Shown here piece after piece: positions 2,887 through 48,989 of a stretch of 64,000 nt of DNA; positions within the stretch are counted from its first letter, which is position 1; every line of letters starts with the position of its first letter. Under the pieces are notes generated by a model. It worked only from the letters and a program-made list of their open reading frames with translations, was not told the origin of the DNA and made no database searches. The stretch is from assembly GCA_009103225.1 (NCBI GenBank), contig RHPI01001616.1, forward strand, positions 126,640 to 190,639. The letters run 5' to 3'. Position numbers and translations under genes: made by a program. The DNA comes from Chlorokybus atmophyticus (Eukaryota; Plantae; Mesostigma and Chlorokybus algae).

Positions 2887-4695
2887 ATGGCGTCGCTTTA
2901 CCTGTGTATCACATTACTCAAGCAGCGATTATTCTGTTTATATGTACATTGTGTACTTGGTCAGACCTCGGCACTCATAGTAATTTGCTTATGTTCTTAC
3001 TTGTTTGCTGGTTTGGGTAAGCATGCTGCTGTTGGGGACATGATCCACTGATGGCACCAAAGTGCAAACATCATCCCCTAACTCTGCCCAAACATGACTG
3101 CCATTGAACAGGTGTAGGAGAAACATCTGACAACATATACAGTTGCTGTACATGCTTATAAGTGTATCCCACTTGTTTTTGTGTTATGGTCAACATATCC
3201 AGCTTATAGCGTGTTGTTGTTCTATAAGGGCCAGGAAAACAAGTCTCTGAACATGTTACTTGGTGGTATCAGTCATGAAGTCATATTCACATTGTACACA
3301 TCATCAGCGTGCGTATATGTCCTGAAACTGATGAGGTATAATGCACAGGGTGAGTGTTGGGTTTGTGTACCCGTCGTACGCCTCGTACAAAGCCCTGGAA
3401 GCCAAGACGCCCGAAGCCAGCGCGCAGTGGCTGACGTATTGGGTGGTGTTCTCACTGTTCATCGTTGTAGAGTACATCGCGGACTACCTCTTCGCATCAT
3501 GGTCAGAGATGGATGGAATGCTTCCTACTGTTGCATCTCGATTTGATGTTGGTTGTTTTCTGCATGGGGGTAGGACTGTCAATGCCAAGTTTATGTGTGT
3601 GAGCGTGTGGTTACGTGCGAGTGTGTTTGTGAGTATGTACATACGTGCTCACACGCATGCGCGTGGTGTTGCATGCAAATGCCTGTTCCTTTTCGTACAC
3701 ATTCTCGCATGCACATTCTCGCATGCACTATATGAGACTGTACACACATGAGTGTACAGTCTTATATGTTACACACACCACATATGCGTGACTGTACACG
3801 AGCACAAGCACGCGCTGTGTGTCACTTCTTATGACCATTGCTATCCGTGTGCAGGTTACCGTTTGCGGCGGTTTACTACGTTGCAAAACTCGGCTTCATT
3901 ATTTGGCTACAGCTGCCACAAACACAGGTTGGGTATTTTTCAACGCACACATCACATGCTAGTTGTGCTGACACACGCATACTGTCCATCTGCAGGGTGC
4001 CAACGTGCTTTACGTGAAGGCCATCCAGCCGCTCATTAAGAGGCACGAGGCTAAGATCGACCAAACGCTCGAGCAGGGACGCATGACGGCGGAGTCCAAC
4101 TTCTTCCACATCCGCTCACGCATCACGGTGCGTAGCGTGTTTGTGCGTGTTGCACTTCAATCCTTGATGTGGTTGCAATGCCCAACAGTGCTGTGAAGTG
4201 GAGTGCGGTTCGTCCATGCATGTGTTTCTGCTTGCATGCCCTGCATCTCTTGTTTGCACTGTCTGTGATACACACATTGCCCTGATGTTGCACTCATAGC
4301 TAGGATGCAGCACTGGTAGCTCAAGGTACCCATCACCTGAGCACACATACGGTTGGCATCACACACACACACCTTCTTGCGTAGTATCATTGCCAACACA
4401 GTCTGTGCAACACGCAAGCCAAGTTTATTGTCGCTAAGTACAGTACAGCAAGGCAGAGTGCAGTGATTCTGATCAAACAAGTCCACAAGTAGTAGCTTAT
4501 CTCCGACTCACATCAAATCTCTGAATCTCTTGCCTTCAGGGTTCTGGTGTGGTGAATAGGCATTCTCCCTCCGACCACGCCTCTTTCGGTGGCCGGGTGG
4601 TGGTGTCGGCCGCGGATGAGGCGGCATCCTCATCAACGGGAGGTGGCGGACCGCCGGGGCGCGTCAAGGGAAAGGACTTTAACGATACATTGTAG
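2887..4695 (+). CDS. TB2/DP1/HVA22 (REEP/Yop1) family ER-shaping membrane protein, about 5 exons
   Basis: Exons encode VSVGFVYPSYASYKALEAKTPEASAQWLTYWVVFSLFIVVEYIADY (about 3350-3502), LPFAAVYYVAKLGFIIWLQLPQTQ and GANVLYVKAIQPLIKRHEAKID, all family signature motifs. The last exon ends KDFNDTL* at 4695. The first exon and start codon are tentative. Confidence 0.9.
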
Positions 4696-35245: not shown

Positions 35246-35719
35246 TTCAAAGCCTGTTTCAAACAGTTTGGAAAAACGCGCTGAAGAGAACCGTTTGCAC
35301 TAACAGTTCCTGAGGACCTTTTTTCATGCCTGGGACTCCGATCCTGAATGTCTATCCGAGAGCACAAGTTAATCCGCATAGCTTGTGCGTCCCGCACTTG
35401 AGCATGCACATGAGCAGATGAGAACACAAGCATAGCATCATGTCAGCTGCATGCTGGATCAGGTCAGCGGCCGTAGCAATGGCGGTGGCGGTGTTGGTGG
35501 CGGCGGCGGCGTTGGCACCAGAGGCAACACTGGAGTGGGTGGGACTAGTGGAGTGTTTTAGACGTGCTGACTGAAGCTTTTGACAAGCGGTTGCGCAGTT
35601 TCGCTAGCTGCTGCTCTCGAGCCTGCTAGTGCATGCTGGTTGGCAAGATCAGGCGTGAGGCGCATTGATGCTTGCACAGTGTGGGCGTTGCTTGACAATA
35701 GATTGAAAACCTTGCTGCT

Positions 35720-38700
35720 ATGGTGGGCGCTGAGGAAGAGTTTGTCGACTTGACCCTTATTGATTATGACGACGATGAGACAGAGCAGGTAGGCACTGAG
35801 TAGAAGCAGAACCAGCGCAAGTTGCTTGCTGCCTACCAATGCCAATGTGTTGGTACAAGGGCTCCTCCTCGGTTGTTTGTACGGTCAATACAAGTGCGGT
35901 ACTGCACTGATATGCGCTCGCTTTTACATTGGCAAACGTTGAGGCATTGGTAATGCCTGCAAGATGCATGCGTATGCACAAGGGCTAGCAGTGGCTGGGA
36001 AGTGTAGCTGAGCACGAGAAGCATCAAGCTCAAGAGGCGGGGAACTGCTACCTAAATGGTTAAATCACATTCACCACTTCAACAACTTTACATGAGAGTA
36101 GAGCATCATGAACCATATACCTTGCTATACTGCTGCACGCATGCATGCAACAATGTAGCCTCTACCGCATACATGTATTCGGTTAAACTAGTGCGCATGT
36201 ATCGCTCACATTGCATGCATACATGTATGCATGCAATGTGAGCGCATGCATGCATTCGCACTATTACCGCATACATGCATGTATGCATGTGCGCTTGCAT
36301 GCATGGCTCCAACCATATTTGCAAGCAGTTTGGCTGCACATAATGATTCCTAGTCCATGCAGGCACCCATCACTACACCACGCATCAGAATAAGACCTCG
36401 CCGGCAAGCTTCTTGTGCTATTGGGCCGGTTATAACCCTCCACAAAACCGCAAGAACAACAAAGCTCGCCAACAAGCAGTCAAGGCGTTCTTCCGTACAC
36501 AGTTAGTTCTTATTTGCATGGTGGTAACTCTGCAGGAGAACTCTGTTCGCCAGTGCAACTCAATCCCATCATCATCATCATAACATGCGTGCGCACGTGC
36601 ATGTGTGCGCAGATGTGTATGCGTGTTCATGATTGCATTCGTGTGGCAGCTGTGCAGACTGAAAGCGTGCCAAGTCTAGCACGCGCAGTGGATAGGGAGC
36701 TGGATCCTGAAGCGCTCTTGCGTGTGATCAGCAAATGCAAAGGTCCACCGCCAGGGCACTCCGCCCAGCACAGCGCTCATGCCGTGGACACGCCAACGGA
36801 CGTGTCGGCTCCACATACGCCAGCTGGCACGAGTTCTTCCCGACCAGCTCCAGACCAATCCGCTACAGCATCTCAACATGTAGCCGTGGAGGAAGAACCA
36901 GCCACATGCACATGGCCAGCCACACTTCACACTGCTGCAAACACGGAGCGCGATGATGCCCAACGCAAAGAACAGTTGCGCGATGACATCCGACAGGAAT
37001 CCACAGATTTGCAGACTCCTGAAAGCTGCATGCGGCTTCTCTATTCTGCTGCCCAACTGTACCAAGAACTTGCACATGCAGGTGCGATGGTTGTGTGCAT
37101 GCCAGTATGCTAATACTGCGTTGTGTAGCAGCGTGTCTACATTGCCGGTTCGCTCCCCTCCGATCTCCCATGTAACATGTCTACTGAGTTTTGACATCTA
37201 ACATTGATTGCTGCAGATTGCACACGCAAGTGGGCTCAGCCTTCTCCTCAATGGGACGACAAGGTTCATGCAGCCCTAGCCAAACTGGGCTTTGCTTGCT
37301 GGCGTCCCGGCCAGAGAGAAGCCGTGCTGGCAGGCTTGCACAAGGTCAATAGAATGGTCAGGTGGCCTACTGGCAGCGGTGCGTAGATTTTGCACTTAGT
37401 TCAACCTTCTTTGAATGTTTGCCATGCAGCCAGCTGTCAACCTTCTTCCCATATTTATGTTGCTTGCGCCGCAGGCAAGAGCGCATGTTACCAGATTCCT
37501 GGCATGCTGCTGCCTGGATTGACTATTGTCGTCGTTCCTTTGAACGTGCTGAAGTGGGACCAGGCAAGCAAGCAAGCAATGCTGAAACACATGCAGCCCT
37601 CTGCTCTTTCAACTATATATCTCTTGATTACATTGCTGCAGGCAGCTTCTTTGCGAAGACGTTTGGGCAAGGACTGCTGCATGATTCTCAACAAGATTGA
37701 CACACGCAACTCTGAAAGCATCCAAGAACAGGACCAGCGCCTGCTTGAGCTGCGAAGGCCGGACTGCGCAACCAAGTTTGTCTTTCTGACACCTGAAAAA
37801 GTAAGTGAATGTGTACAACAATGGGCTGCTCTCAGCCAGCTTCATGCTGGTGTACTTCTTAATCTGAAGCATTCATTGGTTGCTGTGTAGATGGTTTCGT
37901 CAGTAGCCGTGAGAGACTTGTTGCGCGAGCTTTATGCGCAGGACAGGATTGCAGGGGTACGATGAGTATAACTCACTGCCGTATATGCAAGGCCAACACT
38001 TCCAGGCTTTTGCATGCTCCCATCTGCCTGCCCTACTCATCTCTGCCTGTTCAGGTCGTGTTCGATGAATGCCACAATTTGCTGGATTCCCACAAGCTGT
38101 TTCGCAACGACTATGTGGTGAGATCGCATGCACACAAATTTTATTATTGCAGCAGTGAAGTCTGTATGACACTGTGACAATGCGTGCGCAGAAAGCTGCC
38201 CGGTTTATGAAGGAGTATTTACCAACAGTTGCCAAGACGGTGATGACGGCTGTCATCTCAGACCAGGACATGGACAAAATGTCCAGGGTGTTTGATGGGC
38301 TCAGCATAAACCCTCAGCCATGGCAACGCTTCCTGCAACCTTTGCGTCGACCCAACATACGCATTGAGGTACGTGCATCTCATGCCTGTGACGTGGTTGT
38401 CATGCGCATTGTTGGATTGTGCTGTCCTCTATGTGCGCACGCACACAAGCATGCATACATTTCGCGTGCACGCCCGTGCGCATGCAATTGTGAGGCACTG
38501 TGCATATACATACTCATGCACGCACACGGGCACACACACTATTGATGCCACTGCATGCGTGCGTGTCTCTGTGTGACATATGCAGCTTGTCAATCAACAC
38601 CAACATACTGATGAGGCTGCTAAGTTCACTGCTCATTGCATGCAGGGTTGGCATCGTACAGAAAAGCGACGCAACGCGAGCTCAGTTGAGGACTGTCAAG

Positions 38701-41700
38701 ACCTCGTTGACTACATTCACAATGAGTACCAAAATCAGAGCGTCATCATCTACGCGCTTACTGTCGAAGACTGCTACACTATTCAACAGAAGTTGAAGGT
38801 AAGAGAGAACAGAGCACGGTCAACTCGTCACTCCTCGCTGTGAGTGTAGTAGTTGTATGCTAAGTCCTGTGCAGAACTGCGGTTTGGATTCAGTTGAGGT
38901 CTTCCATTCGAGTGACCACAAAACACGAGGGTTGAGCGAGAAAGGTGAGGATGGAGACCTCGCATTTGCTAGCTCTGTCTTCTTGGTATACATGTCATGT
39001 CTGGTTTTGTGTGCTCAGAGAAGCAGGCAAGGTATGAACGATGGAAAGCGGGTAGAGTCCAGGTGAGCATTGTGTTCGTTTTGCATGCTGATAACACACA
39101 CAAACATATAGAGGCGGGTGACACACACATTCACACAGATAAACAGTAAGAGCACAACAAACAGTCGCGTTGCAACCAAACAGATGCAGGTCAAGCGTGT
39201 ATACGCATGTGTGATGTGACATGCGCTTCAGTTGTGCTGCATCTTAACTGTTGTGTCGCCGTTATGCAGGTGATGGTAGCCACCAACGCTTTTGGTGAAG
39301 GCGTTGACAAGGCTGATGTCCGGCTGGTGGTCTTCTACTCAATACCTTTGGATCTGGTTCGCTGGGTCGAAGTACGTGTCCATGATGTTGTCATTCATAC
39401 ACGATGGAGATGCGTCTGTGCGGGCTCGTGCGCGTGCGCGTGCGCGTGCATGTGCGTATGTGTTGTTGATGTTGTTGCTGCTTTTGTTCTTGTGAAGACT
39501 GCATCCCAACTCTTGCTACTTGGCAGGGCATTGGCAGAGCTGGCCGGGATGGTGAGCCTGCAACAGCCATTACTTTTTACAGCTTCGATGACAAGGACGC
39601 AGCTGAAGGGTTGCTGTCAATGAAAAGGTGATATCAAGTACTGCAGCATAGTGCTTTTCGGACAATTAATATTCAAGCTAGTGTATCTGCAGTGATCGCC
39701 ATGAAGAGAAGAGACAAAACCTGCTCAACGTGATCAGAGTGTGGGAAGCGGACTTCCTCTGCAGAGTGCGCCATGTTGAGAAGGTGCACACACGCATTGA
39801 TGCCCACGAACACACGCACACATGAGCACGTGCATGCATATTCATTCGATCACTTGCTCACTTGCTTACTCATTCACACATACCCAAGATCGCACACGCG
39901 CACACGCCCACACATATGCTTGCCGACATCTATTCTATGCAGTTACTTGGCGACGATCCCGGCGCTGACTGCGGCAACTGCGATGTGTGCAATCCGACGG
40001 ACAACGCAGCAGCCATCAACACGATCGAAGCGAGAGACGACATGCTGAAGATGTTGGAGCACGTGCGGCGCAACGAGGGCATCACGTTGAAAACACTCAT
40101 CGAGATGTTACGACAGACCTCCACGACAAAGCACAAGTCGCGCGCATTCTGGACGGTAAGCATGCGATTATGACAACACGCACACGCCCCTGCGCACACA
40201 CACGTGCACGCGCCACGCATGCAATCGCAGAGACACATGCTGCGCTTGACGTGCTCATGCATACTTGACCACTGCCCTCCAGAGACTGGGAGTGCGTGCT
40301 CTGCTTGATGGCTACCTGGAAGACGAGCATGTCCCATACTCCAAAGAGGTATTACGTGTGATTGATTGGGCGCTTGTGGCTGCGTGTGATCTTGTGCGTG
40401 TGCGCGTGCGCGTGTGCGCGTATTTGTGGCTGTGTGTACGCGTGTATCTGTCTAGGTGATTGGTGTGTGCAAGCACCAGTACATACGCGTATATATATAT
40501 ACTTATGCGCGTGTGTGCGTGTGTCTGCCCGCGTGTGTTTGACCATTGATTCAGACTTGGTGCAGGGGGGAAAAGGTGGCAACTATTGTAAGCTCAGCCT
40601 TGGTCTAAAGGGTTTCACCTTTGTGATCAACCCGCCAGACACTTGGTCATTGAAGGCTGAGGACGGCCTGGTAATATAGCTTCATATCCTCAAGCTGATC
40701 CAAACATCAACTTGTAGTGCTCTGTCAGTGCAAGTTAATCTCACACGACAGGTTGATCGTTGTCTTGCAGGACCAGCACGTCAAGGAGTGCACCGAGTGC
40801 CAAGAGACTGGCGACCTTCACTTGTGTGACTTCTGCGAACAAGCCTTCCATAAAGATTGCCTTCCACAACACGCAGGTTGAACATATATCTACACAAGTG
40901 TGCGCGCGCGCGCGCGTGTGCGTGTGTAATGGCCGTTATTTTACTGCTTTCTGTTGACAATACTTACCTGTGTGGCAGTTCCTGCGGCTAATGCTGAGTG
41001 CTGGGCTTGCCCGAAATGCCTGGAGAAGGGCCTGACGCCCAGACAACTCTACCTTACGCGCAAGCTGGTGTTTGCATGGCTGCCAATGGCAGCATTGAAG
41101 GCAAGCTGATGGCACATACACAACATGCATTCACGACAATAATGAACTGTACTTGTAACGTTTACTTGTGTACTTTGCAGACCATTTTTAGGTCAGTCCC
41201 GGGCAAAACGCTCAAAACACCAAACCACATACTGGCACATGCCAAGGTGAGTGGATATGTGGTTTTTTTGTTTTTCATGCAGTGGGTTATGTCAGTCATT
41301 GCCAATCAACTTTAAAGTGATTTGTGTATGCGGCATGTGTTCATACAGGAGGAAGGAGCCCACACCAGCGATGTGTGCGTGCCTTGTCTCAATTGGAAGA
41401 TCTGTTGGGCAGACGTGGACGACAGGCAACAAGTGTGCGTACCAGAAGTGTACGTCTGCAAGGCTCCCAGAAAGGGCAACCATCACCGTTTCTATTCAGC
41501 GCAGGAGGTGAGCAATACCAAAGCAAAAAACGTTTGGCTGTTCGTTCAGCTGCATCTGTTGCATCAATATATACAAAAGGTGCAAGTGGGGTAGCACACA
41601 TATATTATGTCCAAACCCATGCAACACATCACACCACACCTGCACTAACCTATATACCACATACACGACGACCGGGCCAAGCCAAGCATGCGCTTTCATG

Positions 41701-44700
41701 CTACCTACTTGCTAACCCCCCCCCNNNNNNNNNNNNNNNNNNNNNNNNNNNNNNNNNNNNNNNNNNNNNNNNNNNNNNNNNNNNNNNNNNNNNNNNNNNN
41801 NNNNNNNNNNNNNNNNNNNNNNNNNNNNNNNNNNNNNNNNNNNNNNNNNNNNNNNNNNNNNNNNNNNNNNNNNNNNNNNNNNNNNNNNNNNNNNNNNNCC
41901 CCCCCCCCTGTCATGCATGCATGCACTTGCAGCCTTGTTTACCTGCACATGCGCCTTGGTATGTGTGTGCAGGTGGGTTGTCTTCGTTTTAAACGCACGC
42001 TTGTGCGCACACACATACACCATGCATTACTGATGCACCACTGATTTGCGCAAACATCTATCTCCAGATGGAGCGGTACATGGGTAGCCAATGGCGGCGC
42101 AAAAACATCGTCAAGCACGTTGCTAAAGCCATCAGACAAAGTCCTTTTCATCAGCAGCTACAGTTCGTCATGAACGTGCTCAGCGGGTCCAACTTAGTGC
42201 AGAAGGATGTGTCGGACTCCTCTGATGATGACGAGTCTGTTCAAGAAGCGGAGCAGAAGGACACCACTGAAGGTATAAGTGATATGCATACATCGACTTA
42301 CCCAGTACTGCACTCTCAGGTTGCATATGTTGTTAAGTGGTTGCATGTGTCCACATATGCTCGTTGTGCCAGTTTTGCCATTATTGTGCCTGTGGTGGTC
42401 TGTGGTGAAGTGTGCATGTCACCTGAAGCAAGCAGATTCACGCATGCTACTGTCTGTGCTCACTTAACAACCAAAGAAGTTTGTGCTTCTGTCTGTTCAC
42501 ATGTTGTCTCAGATGAAGGGCTTGACCTGCCTGACATTGAGGAGACAAAGCGGAGAAACATGAAGAGAAATCAGGCGTTTCTGGAGGGGATCATGCAGGC
42601 AACACAGAAGAGGCAAAAGATGGATGCAGATGCAGAGGGAAGCGGCAACGCAGAAGCTCAAGAAGTGGAAGAATGGCTTGATGAAGAGGGTGAGTTGTAC
42701 CAGCTTTGGAGCATTGATGTGGTTGTGGGCAGCAATTGACATCAAGCTCTTACATGCAGAGAGAGACTGCGAAGACAATGAGAGCATGCTGTCAACGCCT
42801 TGGACAAGGCTGCCAGCTGTTGTTTGCCAAAGACTAGAGAAGCTGGACTTTGAACGCAGGTGCGTGTGCGCGTTGGTGTTCGATGCGCAGCAGCCTGCTA
42901 TATGCGTTGCTGGCAAGCAATGTGTGCGTGTGTGCGCACGTGTGCCCATGCGCATGGGCGTGTGTGCGTGTGCGGCTGCTTGATAGTTCGCCTGCGTGTG
43001 CATGTCCACAGGCTTGAACCACTATGATTTACATAATCAACGTTGTGGACTTCGTTTGCAGGTTTCTGGCAGAACAAGTGTTAGACAGCTACCATCCCTC
43101 TTTCCGGACTCACGCCGGCACACCTCTCGACACTTCAAGGCGCAACTGCTTCCTCAAGTCTCACATCACGGACGAAGTCATCAAACAGTTGCTCTCATCA
43201 CCTGTGTCAATTGTTCGTACTCACCTTCTGGACGTGTTATCAAATTCTGATGTGCGGCTCTCAAGCTTCGGTGCACAACAGGTGAGAATGTCACATGCTG
43301 TTGTGTGAAGATTGTGGTGCTGTTGATGCTCCCACATTGTGTATGCGCATCTCAGCTCAAGGAGGCAAAGCAGAATGGGGCTGGAAAGAAAGCCTTTCTG
43401 AATGTGCGGATGCCATCAGAGCTGGAGCTTGGTATGTGCTATGTGCTATCTACTATAAGTTGCAAAAAGTTGATCTTTGTTACCACCCGACTAAATTGAA
43501 GTGTCGCACTACTGAGTGATCTTAATTCTCTTGATGATGCAGACACGCAGCAAGAAAAGCTGACATACAGAGTGACAGTTTCAACCGTTAAGAATGTTCA
43601 CCCGCTGAAACTGCGCGTGCAGCTCACTGGTCCCTTCATTGCAGCAAAAGGTTTGATACGTGCATTCTGTTGCGTGCGCGAGCGTGTGCATAACTTCACA
43701 CATCAAACACACAACATGTGACCATGTGTGCTCTTGGTAGGGTGCCGCGCCCATCGCAAATTTGGTAGCGCCCGCTTTCTGCGAGTTCACTGTGGGCGCA
43801 GCGTCTGGTACAATGCAAGCCGACTCGCCCAGATTGTTGACGAGACTTTTGTTGTGGCTGGGAGGCACTACCAATACATCTTTGGCAAAGCTCAACAAGG
43901 TTGGCACTTGTGCTTCTAGCGTTGGTCCATGCAGCACGCATGCAGTATATGTATACACAGATATGCATACATATGGATTATACAACGCACAGAAGTTTGC
44001 ACATTTTGACGCATCTCTTCCTTTGCACATTTTTGCTCAACGACGCTGTCACTCTCTACTCAGAGACACTATTCTTCTTTGCCACGCACGGGGCCAACAT
44101 CCCGACCAAGGATGAGATAACTGTCCAGCAGTTTCATGACTGGGCCTTGCCGCGCGTCAATGCAAGCCACATGTCCAGAAGCAAGTTCAACTCCCGGTTT
44201 GCCTTGAGCTTCAGCGAGTCAGGTCAGGACTAGCTACACCTGTTGGTATGCAGTGCATGTTGGAAAACACAGAGACGAGTGGGTGTGCGTGTGCATGTGG
44301 GTGGGTGTTTGCATATGTGTCTGTGTGTGTGAGAGCGTATGTGCACGCGTGTGTGCATGTGCGTGCCAGAAATAAGAAGAGAGTGTGCTCGCGCGTGTAT
44401 GTGCGTACTTACAGTGTGTCCACCACAGATGCTACAGTGGAACTGGACCCCACGCAAGCAACGCTCATCCCTGACGGATACGCGGCTGACACGAACAATT
44501 GCCTGACGGACGGGAGCGGCTTCATCCACTTGGACTTGGCGCACAGAATGTGGGAAAAGCTTGGCAGCAACCCCCTCGACGGCCTCCCGGGCGCCTTCCA
44601 AGTAAACAAAAGCCCAGATGCATCAAACTATAATCAGCTTACTCAATGTAAGTGTTTGCTCGGGTGCAGATGCGCTGGATGGGAGCGAAAGGCGTGTGGA

Positions 44701-47700
44701 CCGTCTTGCCACCCAACCAGTGGAGATGGCCAGACAAGCTGATGGCGTACCGACACTCGCAGAATAAGTTTGACATCCCTCAACCTGACACCAACCAGGT
44801 GCGCACGCCAGTATCACACATCAAGCACACGCACATGCACAAGCACAAGCACAAGTGTTGATTCTGATACGTTATCACAGCGTTGTTTGGAGGTCTGTGC
44901 GTATGCATCGGAGTACGGCCCTGGCCGCCTCAACAGGCAGGCAATGCCGCTGCTCATCTCACGCGGGATGACTGTTGATATGGCGGTTGAGCAACAGAAG
45001 GAGGTTCTTGAGACGGTAAAGGGTTGTTTTCGAGTATGACGAATGCGCGTGTATGCATGGGCACCAACTGCTTGTGAATGCAACAGAAAATTCAGGAACG
45101 CGTTCATACACTTGCGTGCACAAACACGCACACATGCACCTCAACGGATGTTTATGCTCCGCTTGTGTATTTTCGAGAGCTAAAGTACCAAGCTGAGCCG
45201 GCCTTTTGCTCTGTAGTTGTCCAATATGTTCACAAGCTCAAGCGCTGCGATAGATGTCCTGCATTCAGCTCAGGTATAAAGCCTGTTTGACTTGCTGTCT
45301 GCACCATCAACCTCCCCTGTTGTATACCTTGATGAGAGAAAGCTATTGCTCAATTATCACAGGCTGGAATTGAAGGCAAGGCATTGCGAATGCTAGAAGC
45401 TGGCTTCGAGCCTCTGAAGGACAGACACTTGTACAACAAGCTTTTGGAAGTGTACAAGAAGCGCGTTCGCGAACTGGACAATAACCACATCACTGTGTTG
45501 CGATCACAGAGGATGATTGCACAGGTGGGGTGGTTTTACGAACTTGTTATGTGGTTGTATGTTGGTGTGTCGTCTAAACACGTTTGTGATGCAGCCTGAC
45601 CCGTTTGACCCGCCGGTGCTCGGGCCAGGAGAGGTATTCTTGTCGTCGTCAAGGAAGATCAAAGGGCGCTCGGTGTTGTGTGTGCAGGTATGTTCTGTAT
45701 TCTTGTTGTAACTACTTTGTCACAACAGGCACGCGTTACTTGTCTTACTTGTGTCTGCCCACTCATACGGCTTGCATCTGACCTTCACCTTTTGTATTAC
45801 CTTGGGATACAAACCCAACCTGTGTTGTGTTTGTTTGTGTTGTGTTGATTGATGTGCCTGTACTGTGTGGTTGGCATTGCAACCAATAGTGAGGCTGACG
45901 TTGTGCTGGGTAGGGAGATGTCGTCATCATGAATTCGCCATGCACACTGCCAAGTGACGTGATCAAGGCAAGAGCTGTCAACTGTGCTCAGCTCCTCGAA
46001 TTGGGTCACCAGGTGAAAACTCACGGGCACTCTGCCTTAAGTGTTACAACTCGCACGCGCGCGCGCTTCCACCCGCATGTGCTGCGCGTGCGCGTGTACA
46101 TGTGCATGTGTGCATGCACGTGGCAACAGCAGACGGCATAAGCACAATGTGGTTGACACAAGGAGAATTGTCGTTCTGTGCACAGGACGTCCTCTTTATC
46201 AACATCGTTGATAAAGTCAGCTTGATGGCGAGGGCGTCTGGAGGCGACTTTGATGGCGACCAGCCGCTCATCATCTGGGATCCGTGAGTGCATCAATGTC
46301 TGCAATAGGAAGCAATTGCACTTTGACCTACACAACAACAAAACACATGTCGTGTGTGGATTTTGACTTGCAGAGAATTGGTGGGCTGCATCACCTGCAA
46401 TCTTGATCACATTGAGGAGCCTTCCTTAAATGAGTATGTGAGAAAGTCAGTTGCGCTTGTAGGAGAGGACATACCAACTGCAACAAAGGTGAGAGACGTT
46501 GTTGCTTATGGCACTGGTCGTGCGCACGTGGGTGCGTGTCTTGCGGTTTAGACCGCAGCTTCTTTGTTGCAGGAGCATGTCCTTGACTGTCAGGGTGTTG
46601 TCGAGGACATCCGAGAGACTTCGAAGCTCCTGGACCGCATACAAACCAAACACTCCCCAGGTTGCTGCAGCTGCGCACCCACGCACGCGCCTGCTGGCTC
46701 ACTGACGTACTCACTGACACACGCACACGCACAAGCTTGGCCTCACTGCACTGCGAATGGTACTGCAGAGCACCCCTTGGCTGTCAAGCTTGGATACCTA
46801 CACCGTCAGGCGCTTGATGCTGAGAAGCAAGGCACCAAGGTGAGACACACGCGCACACACATGCACATGAGCATGTATGCACAAGCACATGTATTATAGT
46901 GCGTGCACGTACGCACATGTGCGCGCACGTGCGCACACGCACTATACTACAATATGCAAAGGCAGACACTGCGTGCCTGCACACCAGTGCACTGTTTGTG
47001 AACATCCACTGTGCGTGCAGCTGTCCTGGGCAAGCTTGAAGGAAGAGGTTAAGGTCGCTTTGAGTGACGCAATGCAGGACGACACTGAGGCATCTCCGCT
47101 TCGCACAGCCCTGGATGTAAGTCTCAAAGAGCATTCCAAAACGATTGAAGAGCTGAAGGTATTGTTGTTTGTCCTAAGCTTCAGTGTTTCTGACCAAGCA
47201 ATGGTGCGTTGATGCAAGTAGACAACCTCTGCTTTAACTACCTGCAGGAGCAATCGGATGCTGCAGCATTAGATACGGATCTGTTGTTGCCTGGGCGTAG
47301 CGCTTATATGCAAGAAGCACGCAAACAACACCGTGCGTACAACAGGGGGTAAGCACATAAACATGCACTGGTTCTCAAGTACACACACACACACACAATC
47401 GTTATTCGGTATGAGAGTCCATTGTGCTGATCTGTTAAGTACTTGTCTTTGGCATGTTTGTTAAACTGCTGCTGTTTCAACTACAGGTTGCGTGAAGTGC
47501 TGTCGAAGTTTGAACCGCTGCTGAAAAATGATACACTATCGGAGCGGCGAGAAGCATTGTTGGCTGAAAGGAATGCGCAATGCAGCGCCGTTAAACATGA
47601 GTTTTTGACAGCTTTTCACAAGACGCCACAAGAAGACTGGTGAGAACATGCAACCCACACTTGCTGTAGGTTGTGCTCTGGACTTTGTTTGTTGCATACT

Positions 47701-48159
47701 TGAAGCAGCTTGTAACACATCTCAATATCAGGTATGCCAAAGCTTCGGCATACTATGAGGTTGGCGATACCGAGAGCTCATTTGCCTGGGAGGTAGCATG
47801 TTGTGATGTGATTTTCTAGAATATTACTGCATGCAGTCCCACACCGCAGAAAAAGCCCTTAATGACAGTCTGACTACGCGCGCAGGTATGTGGTGATGTT
47901 CTCACGAACATCAAGGCGAATGCCATAAATGATAGATACACCAACGAGTGCGCGATCAGCAAGTTGAGTAGACAGTGCCGAGAGAAAATGCAGAGGTAAG
48001 TATGGCATAGGGTATGATGATTATGTTGGCAAACATTGCGTTTGCTGTTAGGTGACTGCATAGGTATCACCACACTTTGTTTGGGTTGTCATTGACATCT
48101 ATGACTTGTGCTACAGGAGCGCACAAGATGTTACTGCAGAGGCAGGGGCAGCAATATGA
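35720..48159 (+). CDS. Multi-exon fusion protein: RecQ helicase - Zn/RQC - PHD finger - MBD-like domain - RNA-dependent RNA polymerase (cellular RDR family)
   Basis: Exons from 36.65 kb to the stop at 48157-48159 join in compatible phase without an internal stop. Helicase: WRPGQREAV, PTGSG|KS, DECH, FRNDY, ATNAFGEGVDKADVR, GRAGRDG, CR..CGNCDVC. PHD: C4HC3 at 40.77-41.02 kb. RdRP: RAHRKFGSARFLRV, KFNSRFALSFS, TDGSG, FQMRWMGAKG, LNRQ, MLEAGFEP, SGGDFDGD, KASAYY, FAW. The 5' end (ATG 35720, MVGAEEEFVDLT) is less certain. Confidence 0.85.
37218..40670 (+). other. Sub-domain: RecQ helicase core, Zn-binding and RQC winged-helix region
   Basis: Motif 0 LGFACWRPGQ; motif I PTGSGKS; Ia VVVPLNVLKWDQ; II DECH at 38064-38075; IV SVIIYA; V; VI GRAGRDG; four-Cys Zn site. 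No HRDC domain seen. Confidence 0.93.
40771..41019 (+). other. Sub-domain: PHD finger
   Basis: DQHVKECTECQETGDLHLCDFCEQAFHKDCLPQHA|VPAANAECWACPKC, a canonical C4HC3 pattern. Confidence 0.93.
41349..42085 (+). other. Sub-domain: MBD-fold-like segment
   Basis: LNWKICWADVDDRQQVCVPEVYVCKAPRKGNHHRFYSAQE|MERYM resembles the MBD pattern GW..E....DVYY.SP.GKKFRSK.EL.RYL. It is split by the gap-containing intron. Confidence 0.55.
43740..48000 (+). other. Sub-domain: eukaryotic RdRP (double-psi beta-barrel) catalytic region
   Basis: The ordered RDR motifs are present. Catalytic loop SGGDFDGD..IIWDP has DFDGD at 46246-46260. Confidence 0.96.
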
Positions 48160-48989
48160 GTACATTTGTGAGTGCGCATTCGTCAACTTCGTGTTCTCAG
48201 CTGTAGTGACTGAGCCAAGTGAAGCAAGGTCGACTAAGTGAACGCAAGTGTCACATGCCCGATGCGTCCTGTTGGCACAACCACTGTTTGGTTGATCTTA
48301 CTTGATCGGACTAACCTGCACCACACCCCGCCGCTTCTTGCGTTTAACGGGCTATTATTGCATACAGTTGTGCTTAGCTCTCGTTCACCCCTGATCCTAC
48401 CCTTTGCTCGAGCTGGGCTGTAGTTCATCCGCAAATTCTACCCTTTGCTCGTGCATCACATATTGTGCCTTGTGTGCATGTGCACAAAATGCAAGTGATG
48501 CATGCAACAAGTACGACATATGCATTTTGCATGTCTACTGCACAATTTCGCGACACCCTTGCCGCAAAACTAACATTGTCAGCCGTTCTGCAAGCGGCGA
48601 AACCCCAACCCTCCGGCATCAGCCTAAGGCTCTGGCGGCTGCAGTGGCGAGTTGCCCCGGTTGGCAATTTAGTTGACTGTGGCGCCACTTGTCCAGGTAC
48701 GGCGCTGTTGTCTTGGCTGTGCTCGCTTGAGGGCTGTGCTGCTGTGGGCCCAGCGCATTGCTTGTTTTATTGCTGCTGTGCTTGCTGTGTTGGCACGTCT
48801 AACTCTCTCTTGTGTGCCTACTTTGCCCTACCATCACCTGTTGGTTGTTTGTACAAGCAATGCGATACGGAATTGCACATGCACAGTGGCATACACAGTC
48901 AGCAGCATGAGTGTGTATAATGAATAGAATGCAAGGATTGTGTGCATTGACTTTACTGTCCTGCCACTGTCTTTGCCTATGCATGGACA

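Follow-up and report, generated by a model that had tools for sequence, protein, structure and literature searches.

Gene structure of the locus

A single gene on the forward strand occupies positions 35720-48159 of the window, i.e., of the 64,000-nucleotide stretch of the Chlorokybus atmophyticus genome analysed here. [quoted passage not shown] The public model for this span, Chrsp187S02905 (P0001; 45 exons, 1902 aa), is an automatic prediction and maps exactly, exon by exon, from the ATG at 35720 to the stop codon at 48157-48159. Three RNA-based corrections result in a model of 46 exons and 1947 aa, with an open frame of 5844 nt and 45 introns (44 GT-AG and one GC-AG), which agrees with all 15 coordinates checked in the contigs assembled from an RNA run (X1). 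The coding span is supported by the exon-by-exon mapping, RNA joints, the open frame and the contig coordinates. Protein searches were conducted with the public 1902-aa sequence, which differs from the 1947-aa model at three splice sites. A gene finder built on codon log-odds and splice matrices missed the exon encoding DFDGD and created false 7-nt exons; the mapping of P0001 was used instead.

The N-terminal stretch of approximately 210 aa (35720-37216) is rich in Ser, Pro, Ala, Thr and Gln, and residues 1-240 of P0001 matched no Pfam family at E<=1. Within the helicase core, positions 37564-37641 (78 nt) are coding in the public model and insert 26 residues after motif Ia, ahead of the following RecQ block. 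They are probably an in-frame GC-AG intron that was kept as coding: the splice-site scores, computed from the sequence only, are 5.2 and 5.5, the GC intron at 41101, which has RNA support, uses an identical donor (GCAAGC), and the BLM alignment has a gap at this insert.

Transcript evidence

Between 39.9 kb and a point beyond 45.4 kb, each exon junction is spanned by spliced RNA contigs. Contig 1 of X1 (4183 nt) starts in exon 39693-39765, which belongs to the RecQ zinc module, and continues through the PHD finger, the intron holding an assembly gap, the linker and the exons of the RdRP as far as the 3′ end, with 100% identity and GT-AG splices, extending about 282 nt beyond the stop codon. 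The inferred 3′ UTR accordingly covers 48160-48441, its end being an estimate from contig arithmetic (4183 nt minus the stop codon at contig position 3901) and not an observed end. A second X1 contig leads from the helicase exons into exon 39527-39627 and has a loose end that reads the preceding exon; the helicase core (37.2-39.6 kb) is linked to the RdRP by abutting contigs within exon 39693-39765. A second RNA data set, from another study and year (X2), shares the splice joints of X1, including 40671-40770 and 42860-43061, its depth staying even, at about 6-7, on either side.

The RecQ C-terminal part is joined to the PHD exon by a 100-nt GT-AG intron (40671-40770), spliced in X1 at a depth of 23 and in X2 at 6.4, the shorter flank measuring 103 letters; a preliminary description of this DNA had already read it as an ordinary intron, and two independent RNA data sets now agree. 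Only short spliced introns (100-217 nt) lie between the RecQ C-terminal and PHD exons, so there is no unspliced intergenic DNA in this place. The introns predicted earlier at 40349-40565, 40671-40770 and 41508-42067 are all exact: the first two are RNA joints in both X1 and X2, and the third, absent from the 15 listed joints, follows from the coordinates of contig 1.

The assembly gap, an N run of estimated length at 41725-41898, falls wholly within intron 41508-42067, because no transcript letters derive from it and the frame is kept. Contig 1 passes directly from exon 41349-41507 to exon 42068-42272, in phase 0 on both sides, and its 225 letters between 41098 and 42066 correspond to exons 40979-41100, 41181-41246 and 41349-41507, with none left over. 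A second gene or a promoter hidden in the gap, which the preliminary description had named as a possible refutation, is ruled out by these coordinates.

RecQ, PHD and RdRP are encoded in one gene and, with the helicase core joined through abutting contigs, apparently in one spliced transcript. The gene is real, expressed and intact, and its 46 exons encode one polypeptide of about 1947 aa. The earlier reading of one fused gene at 35720-48159 rather than two neighbours, with more than 45 GT/GC-AG-bounded exons in compatible phase, was therefore correct; the single public model and the spliced RNA agree on it.

The helicase half

The helicase core (37217-39627) was identified from Pfam, NCBIfam and PDB matches. 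It contains motifs 0 (WRPGQ), I (PTGSGKS), II (DECH), V (VATNAFGEGVDK) and VI (GRAGRDG), and Pfam places DEAD at residues 243-444 and Helicase_C at 497-610 of P0001. The top NCBIfam match was recQ_fam (190 bits, 5.4e-56), below its cut-off of 219.8. The best 38 PDB matches were all RecQ helicases (BLM at 1.3e-37, RECQ1, RECQ5, EcRecQ, RECQ4 and WRN), whereas RNA helicases appeared at 1e-12 or worse, against 1e-37 for the RecQs. Scores for individual subfamilies are close to each other (BLM 133, RECQ1 127 and RECQ5 117 bits). Motif III reads TAV and departs from TAT, the usual RecQ form; compared by eye with the E. coli RecQ motif, the aromatic loop also appears altered. Judged by these matches, the helicase is of RecQ type, but divergent.

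The core is followed by the predicted RecQ zinc-binding subdomain and the start of a possible RQC-like winged helix (39693-40155). The four Cys residues (FLCR ... CGNCDVC) are spaced as expected, and this region is included in the RECQ1 alignment, which ends at residue 712 of P0001; Pfam RecQ_Zn_bind scores 14 bits, short of its cut-off of 25. Two further exons (40283-40348 and 40566-40670), delimited by RNA joints 40156-40282 and 40349-40565, may finish the winged helix. RQC gave no Pfam match in P0001 at E<=1, alignment to a small BLM/WRN profile by hhalign ran into the first RQC helices with a non-significant probability of 4.6%, and AF2 applied to P0001:615-965 without an alignment returned a pLDDT of 36.5. 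The proposal of RecQ motifs followed by a Zn/RQC region is thus borne out for motifs 0, I, II, V and VI and the four-Cys cluster, and for RQC it lacks a Pfam or significant hhalign match. No HRDC domain was matched in P0001:600-1180, where the PHD finger and the Cys-rich segment are located; HRDC is found in BLM, WRN, Sgs1 and bacterial RecQ, but is not universal in the RecQ family.

The PHD finger, Cys-rich segment and linker

A C4HC3 PHD finger is encoded at 40771-41100, split by intron 40877-40978 and supported by PDB matches, Pfam PHD and RNA joints. Its ligands, CxxC-x9-CxxC-x4-HxxC-x14-CxxC, can be read directly. In a phmmer search of PDB the closest proteins were the CHD4 PHD (2.8e-9), PHF21A (1.5e-7) and AIRE (3.9e-6), and the Pfam PHD profile is covered in full (positions 1-47 of 47), with 16.8 bits where the cut-off is 24. 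The PHD finger of the preliminary description is hence genuine; its exon ends at the GC donor 41101, in contrast to 41067 in the public model. The residue two before the first Cys is Lys here but acidic in CHD4 PHD2, an acidic residue at this point being the mark of H3K4me0-reading PHDs.

The Cys-rich segment that follows (41181-42272; exons 41181-41246, 41349-41507 and 42068-42272) had been regarded as MBD-like. It produced no Pfam match at E<=1 and no PDB sequence match at E<=10, its atlas scores were at most 0.43, with neighbours of zinc-finger type, and the AF2 pLDDT was 36; on these four negative results the MBD reading was rejected as unsupported. The position aligned by eye with the arginine of the canonical MBD ‘FRS’ motif reads Tyr (FYS). 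Further downstream lies an acidic/basic linker (42513-42859). Its exon 42760-42859 is missing from the public model but flanked in both X1 and X2 by the RNA joints 42690-42759 and 42860-43061, and the protein search found no relatives of the linker.

The RdRP half

The pre-domain and the cellular RdRP domain (residues 1178-1707 of P0001) are encoded at 43062-47158 and supported by PF05183, PDB and atlas matches. PF05183 is matched with 264 bits and E 3.3e-78 over profile positions 3-542 of 582. Single exons match colinear parts of the profile, and Pfam searches with single exons or ORF pieces returned only weak and partial matches. The catalytic-loop exon (46186-46283) encodes SGGDFDGD, aligned to SGGDYDGD of QDE-1. 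With a nearly full-length profile match and an intact DFDGD, the RdRP domain is as complete as had been claimed for the sequence stopping at 48159.

The best PDB match of this half is Neurospora QDE-1, with 94 bits as opposed to 66 for RDR2. In the atlas, the closest cluster (score 0.97) consists of plant proteins and carries the automatic name ‘RDR4’. Identity to any RdRP matched is at most about 30%. With QDE-1 and the plant ‘RDR4’ cluster closest, a gamma-clade affiliation is suggested, and DFDGD is the motif of gamma-clade RDRs (PMC9290346). By motif and similarity scores, the RdRP probably belongs to the gamma clade (RDR3/4/5, QDE-1-like). As QDE-1 is its best solved relative, the analogy with QDE-3/QDE-1 is strengthened.

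Comparison with known systems

In Neurospora quelling and qiRNA biogenesis, QDE-3 and QDE-1 cooperate in the conversion of DNA to aberrant RNA and dsRNA; QDE-1 makes RNA from ssDNA and requires RPA and the RecQ helicase QDE-3 (PMC2950127). The two enzyme families of this system, RecQ (QDE-3) and RdRP/DdRP (QDE-1), acting with RPA in Neurospora crassa, are the same as those found here, but in Neurospora they are separate proteins, whereas in Chlorokybus they are joined in one chain on either side of a PHD finger, and the active site reads DYDGD in QDE-1 and DFDGD in the algal protein. In plants, DNA-damage small RNAs of rice need OsRecQ1 and OsRDR1 (PMC3559376), and OsRDR3, a member of the gamma clade, uses both ssDNA and ssRNA as templates and works at repeat-rich regions (PMC9290346). 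DFDGD is common to the Chlorokybus protein and the plant gamma RDRs (Arabidopsis RDR3/4/5, OsRDR3, tomato Ty-1/Ty-3), yet the nearest plant RdRP clusters in the atlas (699-992 aa) possess only RdRP-family Pfam domains, without helicase or PHD. The earlier proposal that the protein would act independently of Pol IV gained no support; partial NRPD1/NRPE1-like transcripts are known from Chlorokybus (PMC11194755).

Helicase-RdRP fusions have been described in Dictyostelium (RrpA-C), Peronosporomycete oomycetes, Hydra and Nematostella (PMC4791657). As in the present case, an N-terminal superfamily-2 helicase (DEAD and Helicase_C) precedes a C-terminal RdRP; however, those helicases have been classed as DEAD-box or Dicer-related, and the proteins lack a PHD finger and belong to other lineages and another RdRP clade. 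Despite the same order, a fusion of this type was rejected for Chlorokybus on account of its RecQ-type helicase with zinc module (RecQs at 1e-37, RNA helicases at 1e-12). A 2306-aa protein from the Logan/ENA assemblies (P0007) also combines both enzymes (RdRP at 517-1163, DEAD/Helicase_C at 1802-2166), but in reversed order and without PHD. Its helicase shows DEAD/Helicase_C and AAA-type matches in Pfam; given the reversed order and the lack of a RecQ_Zn_bind match, it was not accepted as a second RecQ+RdRP example.

Many RecQ-topoisomerase III fusions, bacterial or metagenomic, occur among the 120 RecQ-like matches listed. There the partner enzyme is a different one, the proteins are prokaryotic and have no link to RNA silencing; nevertheless, RecQ is joined to a functional partner. 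RecQ is known to partner with topoisomerase III, so a RecQ fusion can reflect a genuine partnership.

The two protein database searches returned no second RecQ+RdRP protein among their matches, so that within these matches the fusion is seen in one species only, C. atmophyticus, and the literature search found no description of a RecQ-PHD-RdRP architecture. An exhaustive HMMER search, for which the query was one 57-aa exon, returned the protein itself and three low-complexity false matches (granulin, ankyrin and Kelch), and therefore says nothing on distant relatives. The fused gene model and its Pfam domains are already public, and the architecture is undescribed in the literature searched; the novelty suggested in the preliminary description thus holds, within these searches, for the architecture, but not for the gene model.

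Discussion

On balance, we lean towards the fused protein working as a covalent version of the Neurospora QDE-3 and QDE-1 pair. By analogy with that system, the PHD finger would bind histone H3 tails and so bring the enzyme to chosen chromatin, where the RecQ motor would unwind DNA, e.g., at repeats, stalled forks or breaks; the RdRP could then transcribe the unwound single strands into aberrant RNA, from which it would make double-stranded RNA for Dicer. A broader proposal, to which we assign a less than even chance, regards the protein as a ‘Rosetta stone’ fusion: the partnership of RecQ with gamma-clade/QDE-1-type polymerases would be ancient, would be present in the green lineage and would make silencing-trigger RNA from unwound DNA, here as one chromatin-docked enzyme.

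The fusion could be real while the helicase serves the RdRP on RNA, by clearing structure or proteins from the template or by freeing dsRNA, with the PHD finger doing no more than bringing the complex to nascent transcripts still bound to chromatin. The changes in motif III and in the aromatic loop, judged against the canonical forms, could mean a change of substrate. Roles of this kind were proposed for the N-terminal helicases of Dictyostelium, oomycetes and cnidarians and for separate helicases of other RdRP complexes, the order of helicase followed by RdRP is known from Dictyostelium, Peronosporomycetes, Hydra and Nematostella (PMC4791657), and cellular RdRPs including OsRDR3 also copy ssRNA (PMC9290346). 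The helicase, though, is of RecQ type, its top PDB matches being without exception RecQ DNA helicases, with RNA helicases from 1e-12 down, and QDE-1, the best solved relative, has DNA-templated activity (PMC2950127); we consider an RNA substrate unlikely. Doubtful to a greater degree is that the full-length product is a minor read-through or long isoform, the main products being a separate RecQ helicase, a PHD-RdRP protein initiated internally near 39.7 kb, or both. The depth in X1 would fit this, as coverage of the 3′ contig (23x) is roughly threefold that of the 5′ contig (about 7x) and the break lies inside exon 39693-39765; likewise, assembly of the RecQ exons is incomplete (0.23 and 0.15 of the words sampled, against about 0.35-0.39 expected; in X1, 0.23 against 0.37 for downstream exons). 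But the depth of X2 is even over the same break (about 6.0 against 6.4-7.7), poly(A) libraries are commonly 3′-biased, and the 3′ contig starts inside the RecQ zinc module, which by our reasoning would be useless without the helicase core. Moreover, the joints not among the 15 listed are six, precisely the number that the model still needs, two of which would be 39628-39692 and 39766-39942, and between the RecQ C-terminal and PHD exons there are only the 100-217 nt spliced introns.

A lineage-specific chimera that arose by exon shuffling and is transcribed, with one half catalytically dead or decaying and no coupled function, appears to us less probable again. It would agree with the absence of an orthologue of the same architecture among the protein-search matches, with the score of the helicase under the recQ_fam cut-off, and with a decayed partial duplicate of the 5′ end of the gene, 34 kb upstream, which shows local rearrangement. 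That duplicate, however, lacks GKS and has acquired a stop, illustrating how decay looks at this locus; the fused gene, by contrast, retains an intact 5844-nt frame over 46 exons and all the motifs checked (GKS, DECH, GRAGRDG, the four zinc Cys and DFDGD). Very improbable is an artefact of annotation or assembly, in which two neighbouring genes were merged over the gap: there is indeed an N run of estimated length in the span and the public model was generated automatically, but spliced RNA crosses the region from 39.9 to beyond 45.4 kb, gap intron included, with no extra letters, and the two studies agree.

Neurospora genetics ties QDE-3, RPA and QDE-1 together in marking repeated or damaged DNA for RNA silencing. 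A natural fusion of RecQ, via a PHD finger, with a QDE-1-like DFDGD polymerase is an independent, sequence-level sign that both activities belong together, and it offers a single recombinant protein in which DNA unwinding and DNA- or RNA-templated RNA synthesis could be studied as one coupled reaction. The fusion also suggests seeking RecQ partners for plant gamma RDRs; if true, the ‘Rosetta stone’ reading would point to a DNA-templated, RecQ-partnered role of the plant RDR3/4/5 (Ty-1) clade. Chlorokybus is among the earliest-branching streptophytes, so the gene bears on the silencing machinery as it was before the Pol IV-RDR2 coupling of land plants.

Gene model and public annotation

Protein searches identified the product of the locus as P0001, the public 1902-aa protein model Chrsp187S02905 (eukprot jgi/Chlat1/2766/Chrsp187S02905). 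By tblastn and exact spliced mapping, it runs on the plus strand from an ATG at 35720 to a stop codon at 48157-48159 in 45 exons, which is exactly the span 35720-48159 of the preliminary description. Precomputed Pfam annotations of the public model list DEAD, Helicase_C, RdRP and RdRP_head; the RecQ–RdRP fused gene model is already public, but undescribed. Neither the identifier Chrsp187S02905 nor any description of a RecQ–RdRP fusion was found in the literature searched, and a survey of small-RNA genes in green plants reports ‘ancient RDR-like homologs’ in Chlorokybus, while nowhere using the word helicase (PMC7994812).

RNA contigs differ from Chrsp187S02905 at three splice sites, all on the plus strand. 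The second PHD exon ends at 41100 (GC donor at 41101) and not at 41067, which adds VFAWLPMAALK; an exon of 100 nt (42760-42859), missed by the public model, follows an exon ending at 42689; and the exon starting at 44429 (acceptor 44428) begins nine bases upstream of the public start at 44438. The RNA-corrected model comprises 46 exons and 45 introns (44 GT-AG and one GC-AG), with a median intron of 102 nt and a median exon of 107 nt. Its open frame is 5844 nt, or 1947 aa, and the remaining letters of the 3′ contig give a 3′ UTR of ca. 282 nt. Additionally, the public model likely translates an in-frame 78-nt GC-AG intron (37564-37641): this candidate intron, predicted from the sequence, inserts 26 residues (ASKQAMLKHMQPSALSTIYLLITLLQ) into the RecQ core, and without it the spacing downstream of motif Ia is that usual for RecQ helicases.

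A decayed, inverted partial copy of the 5′ end of the fusion gene lies on the minus strand at 561-2359. It takes in sequence upstream of the gene as well as its first exons and intronic DNA, with 70-87% DNA identity to 35480-37775. The GKS of motif I is lost and a stop codon is present, so that the copy is a pseudogene fragment derived from a DNA-level duplication.

Transcript continuity across the fusion

Exons of the fusion gene are present in RNA data sets from two independent studies of Chlorokybus atmophyticus (X1 and X2), whose runs were aligned to 39400-45399, each listed joint being assigned to its unique GT..AG. A 4183-nt contig from X1 matched the plus strand with 100% identity in GT-AG-spliced pieces. 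These begin at 39941, in an exon of the RecQ zinc module, continue over both PHD exons (40770-40872 and 40975-41098) and 42066-42270 into linker and RdRP exons, and extend beyond 45399. Contigs from X2, a separate study of 2013, are shorter and have identical joints, among them the RecQ-side/PHD joint (intron 40671-40770) and the linker/pre-RdRP joint (intron 42860-43061). Both are spliced in both studies, and the one-gene fusion proposed in the preliminary description, for which reads across 40671-40770 had been named as one check, thus holds.

Introns that were not listed were solved from the sequence and contig coordinates (GC-AG 41101-41180, 41247-41348, 41508-42067 and 43651-43740), and the resulting exon chain matches all 15 of the 15 contig coordinates checked. 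The contig letters between the pieces at 41098 and 42066 are exactly those of exons 40979-41100, 41181-41246 and 41349-41507. The assembly gap (41725-41898) therefore contributes zero letters to the mature RNA in the X1 contig arithmetic, with phase 0 on both sides, and lies within an intron. Since the contig leaves no letters for the gap, a gene or promoter concealed there and splitting the transcript is excluded.

The 4183-nt contig starts inside exon 39693-39765, so that it includes the zinc module and leaves the helicase core outside. Helicase-core exons are found on a second X1 contig, which enters 39527-39627 and whose loose end reads the exon before it; the two contigs meet inside a single exon of 73 nt, and none of the X1 and X2 contigs carries both catalytic domains on one sequenced molecule. 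Six joints are unlisted, the same number as the corrected model still needs. Depth in X1 is ca. 7x for the 5′ contig and 23x for the 3′ contig, and in X2 it is even (ca. 6-7). RecQ exons are only partly covered (0.23 and 0.15 of sampled words, against ca. 0.35-0.39 for complete coverage), and the downstream stretch is at full expectation in X1 (0.37 of words). We read the weaker 5′ coverage as 3′ bias; an additional, shorter isoform of the fusion gene may also exist.

In two further RNA runs, X3 and X4, contigs match the locus solely at short, (TG/CG)-rich intronic simple repeats (39427-39457, 39805-39825, 40393-40524 and 42921-42945) and then continue into unrelated sequence. Such microsatellite-like intronic tracts recur in other Chlorokybus transcripts or loci.

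Domain composition of the fused protein

Pfam places DEAD at residues 243-444 and Helicase_C at 497-610 of P0001. The top NCBIfam models are recQ_fam (190 bits, 5e-56, under its cut-off of 219.8) and then recQ. The best 38 matches among solved structures are all RecQ helicases, led by BLM (1.3e-37) and RECQ1 (1.1e-35) and followed by RECQ5, E. coli RecQ, RECQ4 and WRN, with RNA helicases appearing only from 1e-12. Motifs 0, I (PTGSGKS), II (DECH), V and VI (GRAGRDG) and the four zinc cysteines were all found; motif III has the sequence TAV, and the aromatic loop looks altered by eye. Only 14 bits were obtained for RecQ_Zn_bind; Pfam finds no RQC, of which hhalign gives only a hint, and HRDC is absent by Pfam.

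The PHD finger shows the full C4HC3 pattern and matches the solved fingers of CHD4 (2.8e-9), PHF21A (1.5e-7) and AIRE (3.9e-6), all of them readers of unmethylated H3K4. In the alignment, a Lys occupies the position, two before the first Cys, where the second CHD4 finger has an acidic residue, and no histone specificity was therefore assigned. The adjoining segment (exons 41181-42272, residues ca. 850-960), previously labelled MBD-like, did not keep this label: it had no Pfam match at E<=1 and no PDB match at E<=10, its scores against an atlas of protein clusters compared by language-model features were <=0.43 with zinc-finger-type neighbours, and the AlphaFold model of the region is unusable (pLDDT 36.5). 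It is a Cys-rich segment of unassigned fold. No relative of the linker (residues 785-1180) was found in the search of long proteins.

The polymerase is recognised by Pfam RdRP at residues 1178-1707 (264 bits, 3.3e-78). Its catalytic loop SGGDFDGD aligns with SGGDYDGD of QDE-1, the RdRP that is paired in Neurospora with the RecQ helicase QDE-3; among solved structures, those of QDE-1 score highest (94 bits), with Arabidopsis RDR2 lower (66 bits). The atlas cluster closest in language-model features is a plant one, auto-named ‘probable RDR4’ (0.97, 219 shared features). The gamma clade, common to plants and fungi, has DFDGD as its hallmark (PMC9290346). The QDE-1 match, the ‘RDR4’ cluster and the DFDGD motif together provisionally suggest a gamma-clade polymerase. 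Of the preliminary assignments, the RecQ helicase is thus borne out by recQ_fam and the solved RecQ structures, the PHD finger by its C4HC3 pattern and solved PHD matches, and the RdRP stands as QDE-1-like.

Occurrence of the architecture

The fusion was seen in one species, Chlorokybus atmophyticus, which is among the earliest-branching streptophyte algae. Among 120 listed of 156 RecQ-like proteins (1046-3328 aa), P0001 alone has an RdRP domain, and the whole-protein atlas search returned plain RecQ clusters only. Among 11 RdRP matches a helicase was also present only in P0007, an unnamed protein from Logan/ENA assemblies; in contrast to the Chlorokybus fusion, the domain order is reversed and the helicase has no RecQ zinc-module match. 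The RecQ–RdRP architecture is likely absent elsewhere, a grading that reflects RecQ and RdRP protein searches based on shared words and a sole exhaustive search with a 57-aa exon.

P0007 (2306 aa) has an N-terminal RdRP (517-1163) and a C-terminal DEAD/Helicase_C (1802-2166), which reverses the known helicase–RdRP order. Among the RecQ-like matches, dozens of bacterial and metagenomic proteins of ca. 1300 aa (P0020-P0120) carry RecQ with zinc module and HRDC, fused to topoisomerase III (PF01131, PF01751), a known RecQ partner. Like the Chlorokybus protein, they join RecQ to another enzyme, and we offer them as a parallel.

Possible function

The gene is expressed, and its product combines the RecQ–RdRP architecture with intact catalytic motifs. 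The preliminary interpretation is partly supported: the fusion, the RecQ helicase, the PHD finger and the QDE-1-like RdRP stand, the MBD does not, and the role as a silencing initiator is a proposal by analogy. The claim that it acts without Pol IV is unsupported, as partial NRPD1/NRPE1-like transcripts occur in Chlorokybus (PMC11194755).

The main rival reading is that the helicase would act on RNA templates, a role already proposed for other helicase–RdRP proteins. Such fusions are described from Dictyostelium, Peronosporomycete oomycetes, Hydra and Nematostella, and their helicases are of DEAD-box or Dicer-related type (PMC4791657). The Chlorokybus protein is of this known kind, with a helicase of RecQ type and an added chromatin reader. 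Neurospora QDE-1 produces aberrant RNA on ssDNA templates and converts it into dsRNA, which requires RPA and QDE-3 (PMC2950127); DNA-damage small RNAs of rice require both OsRecQ1 and OsRDR1 (PMC3559376); and the gamma-clade OsRDR3 uses ssDNA and ssRNA templates and acts at repeat-rich regions (PMC9290346). By analogy with these systems, the simplest reading is that the fusion protein would represent QDE-3 and QDE-1 coupled in cis: the PHD finger would dock the enzyme on H3 tails, the RecQ part would unwind DNA and the polymerase would copy the exposed strand.
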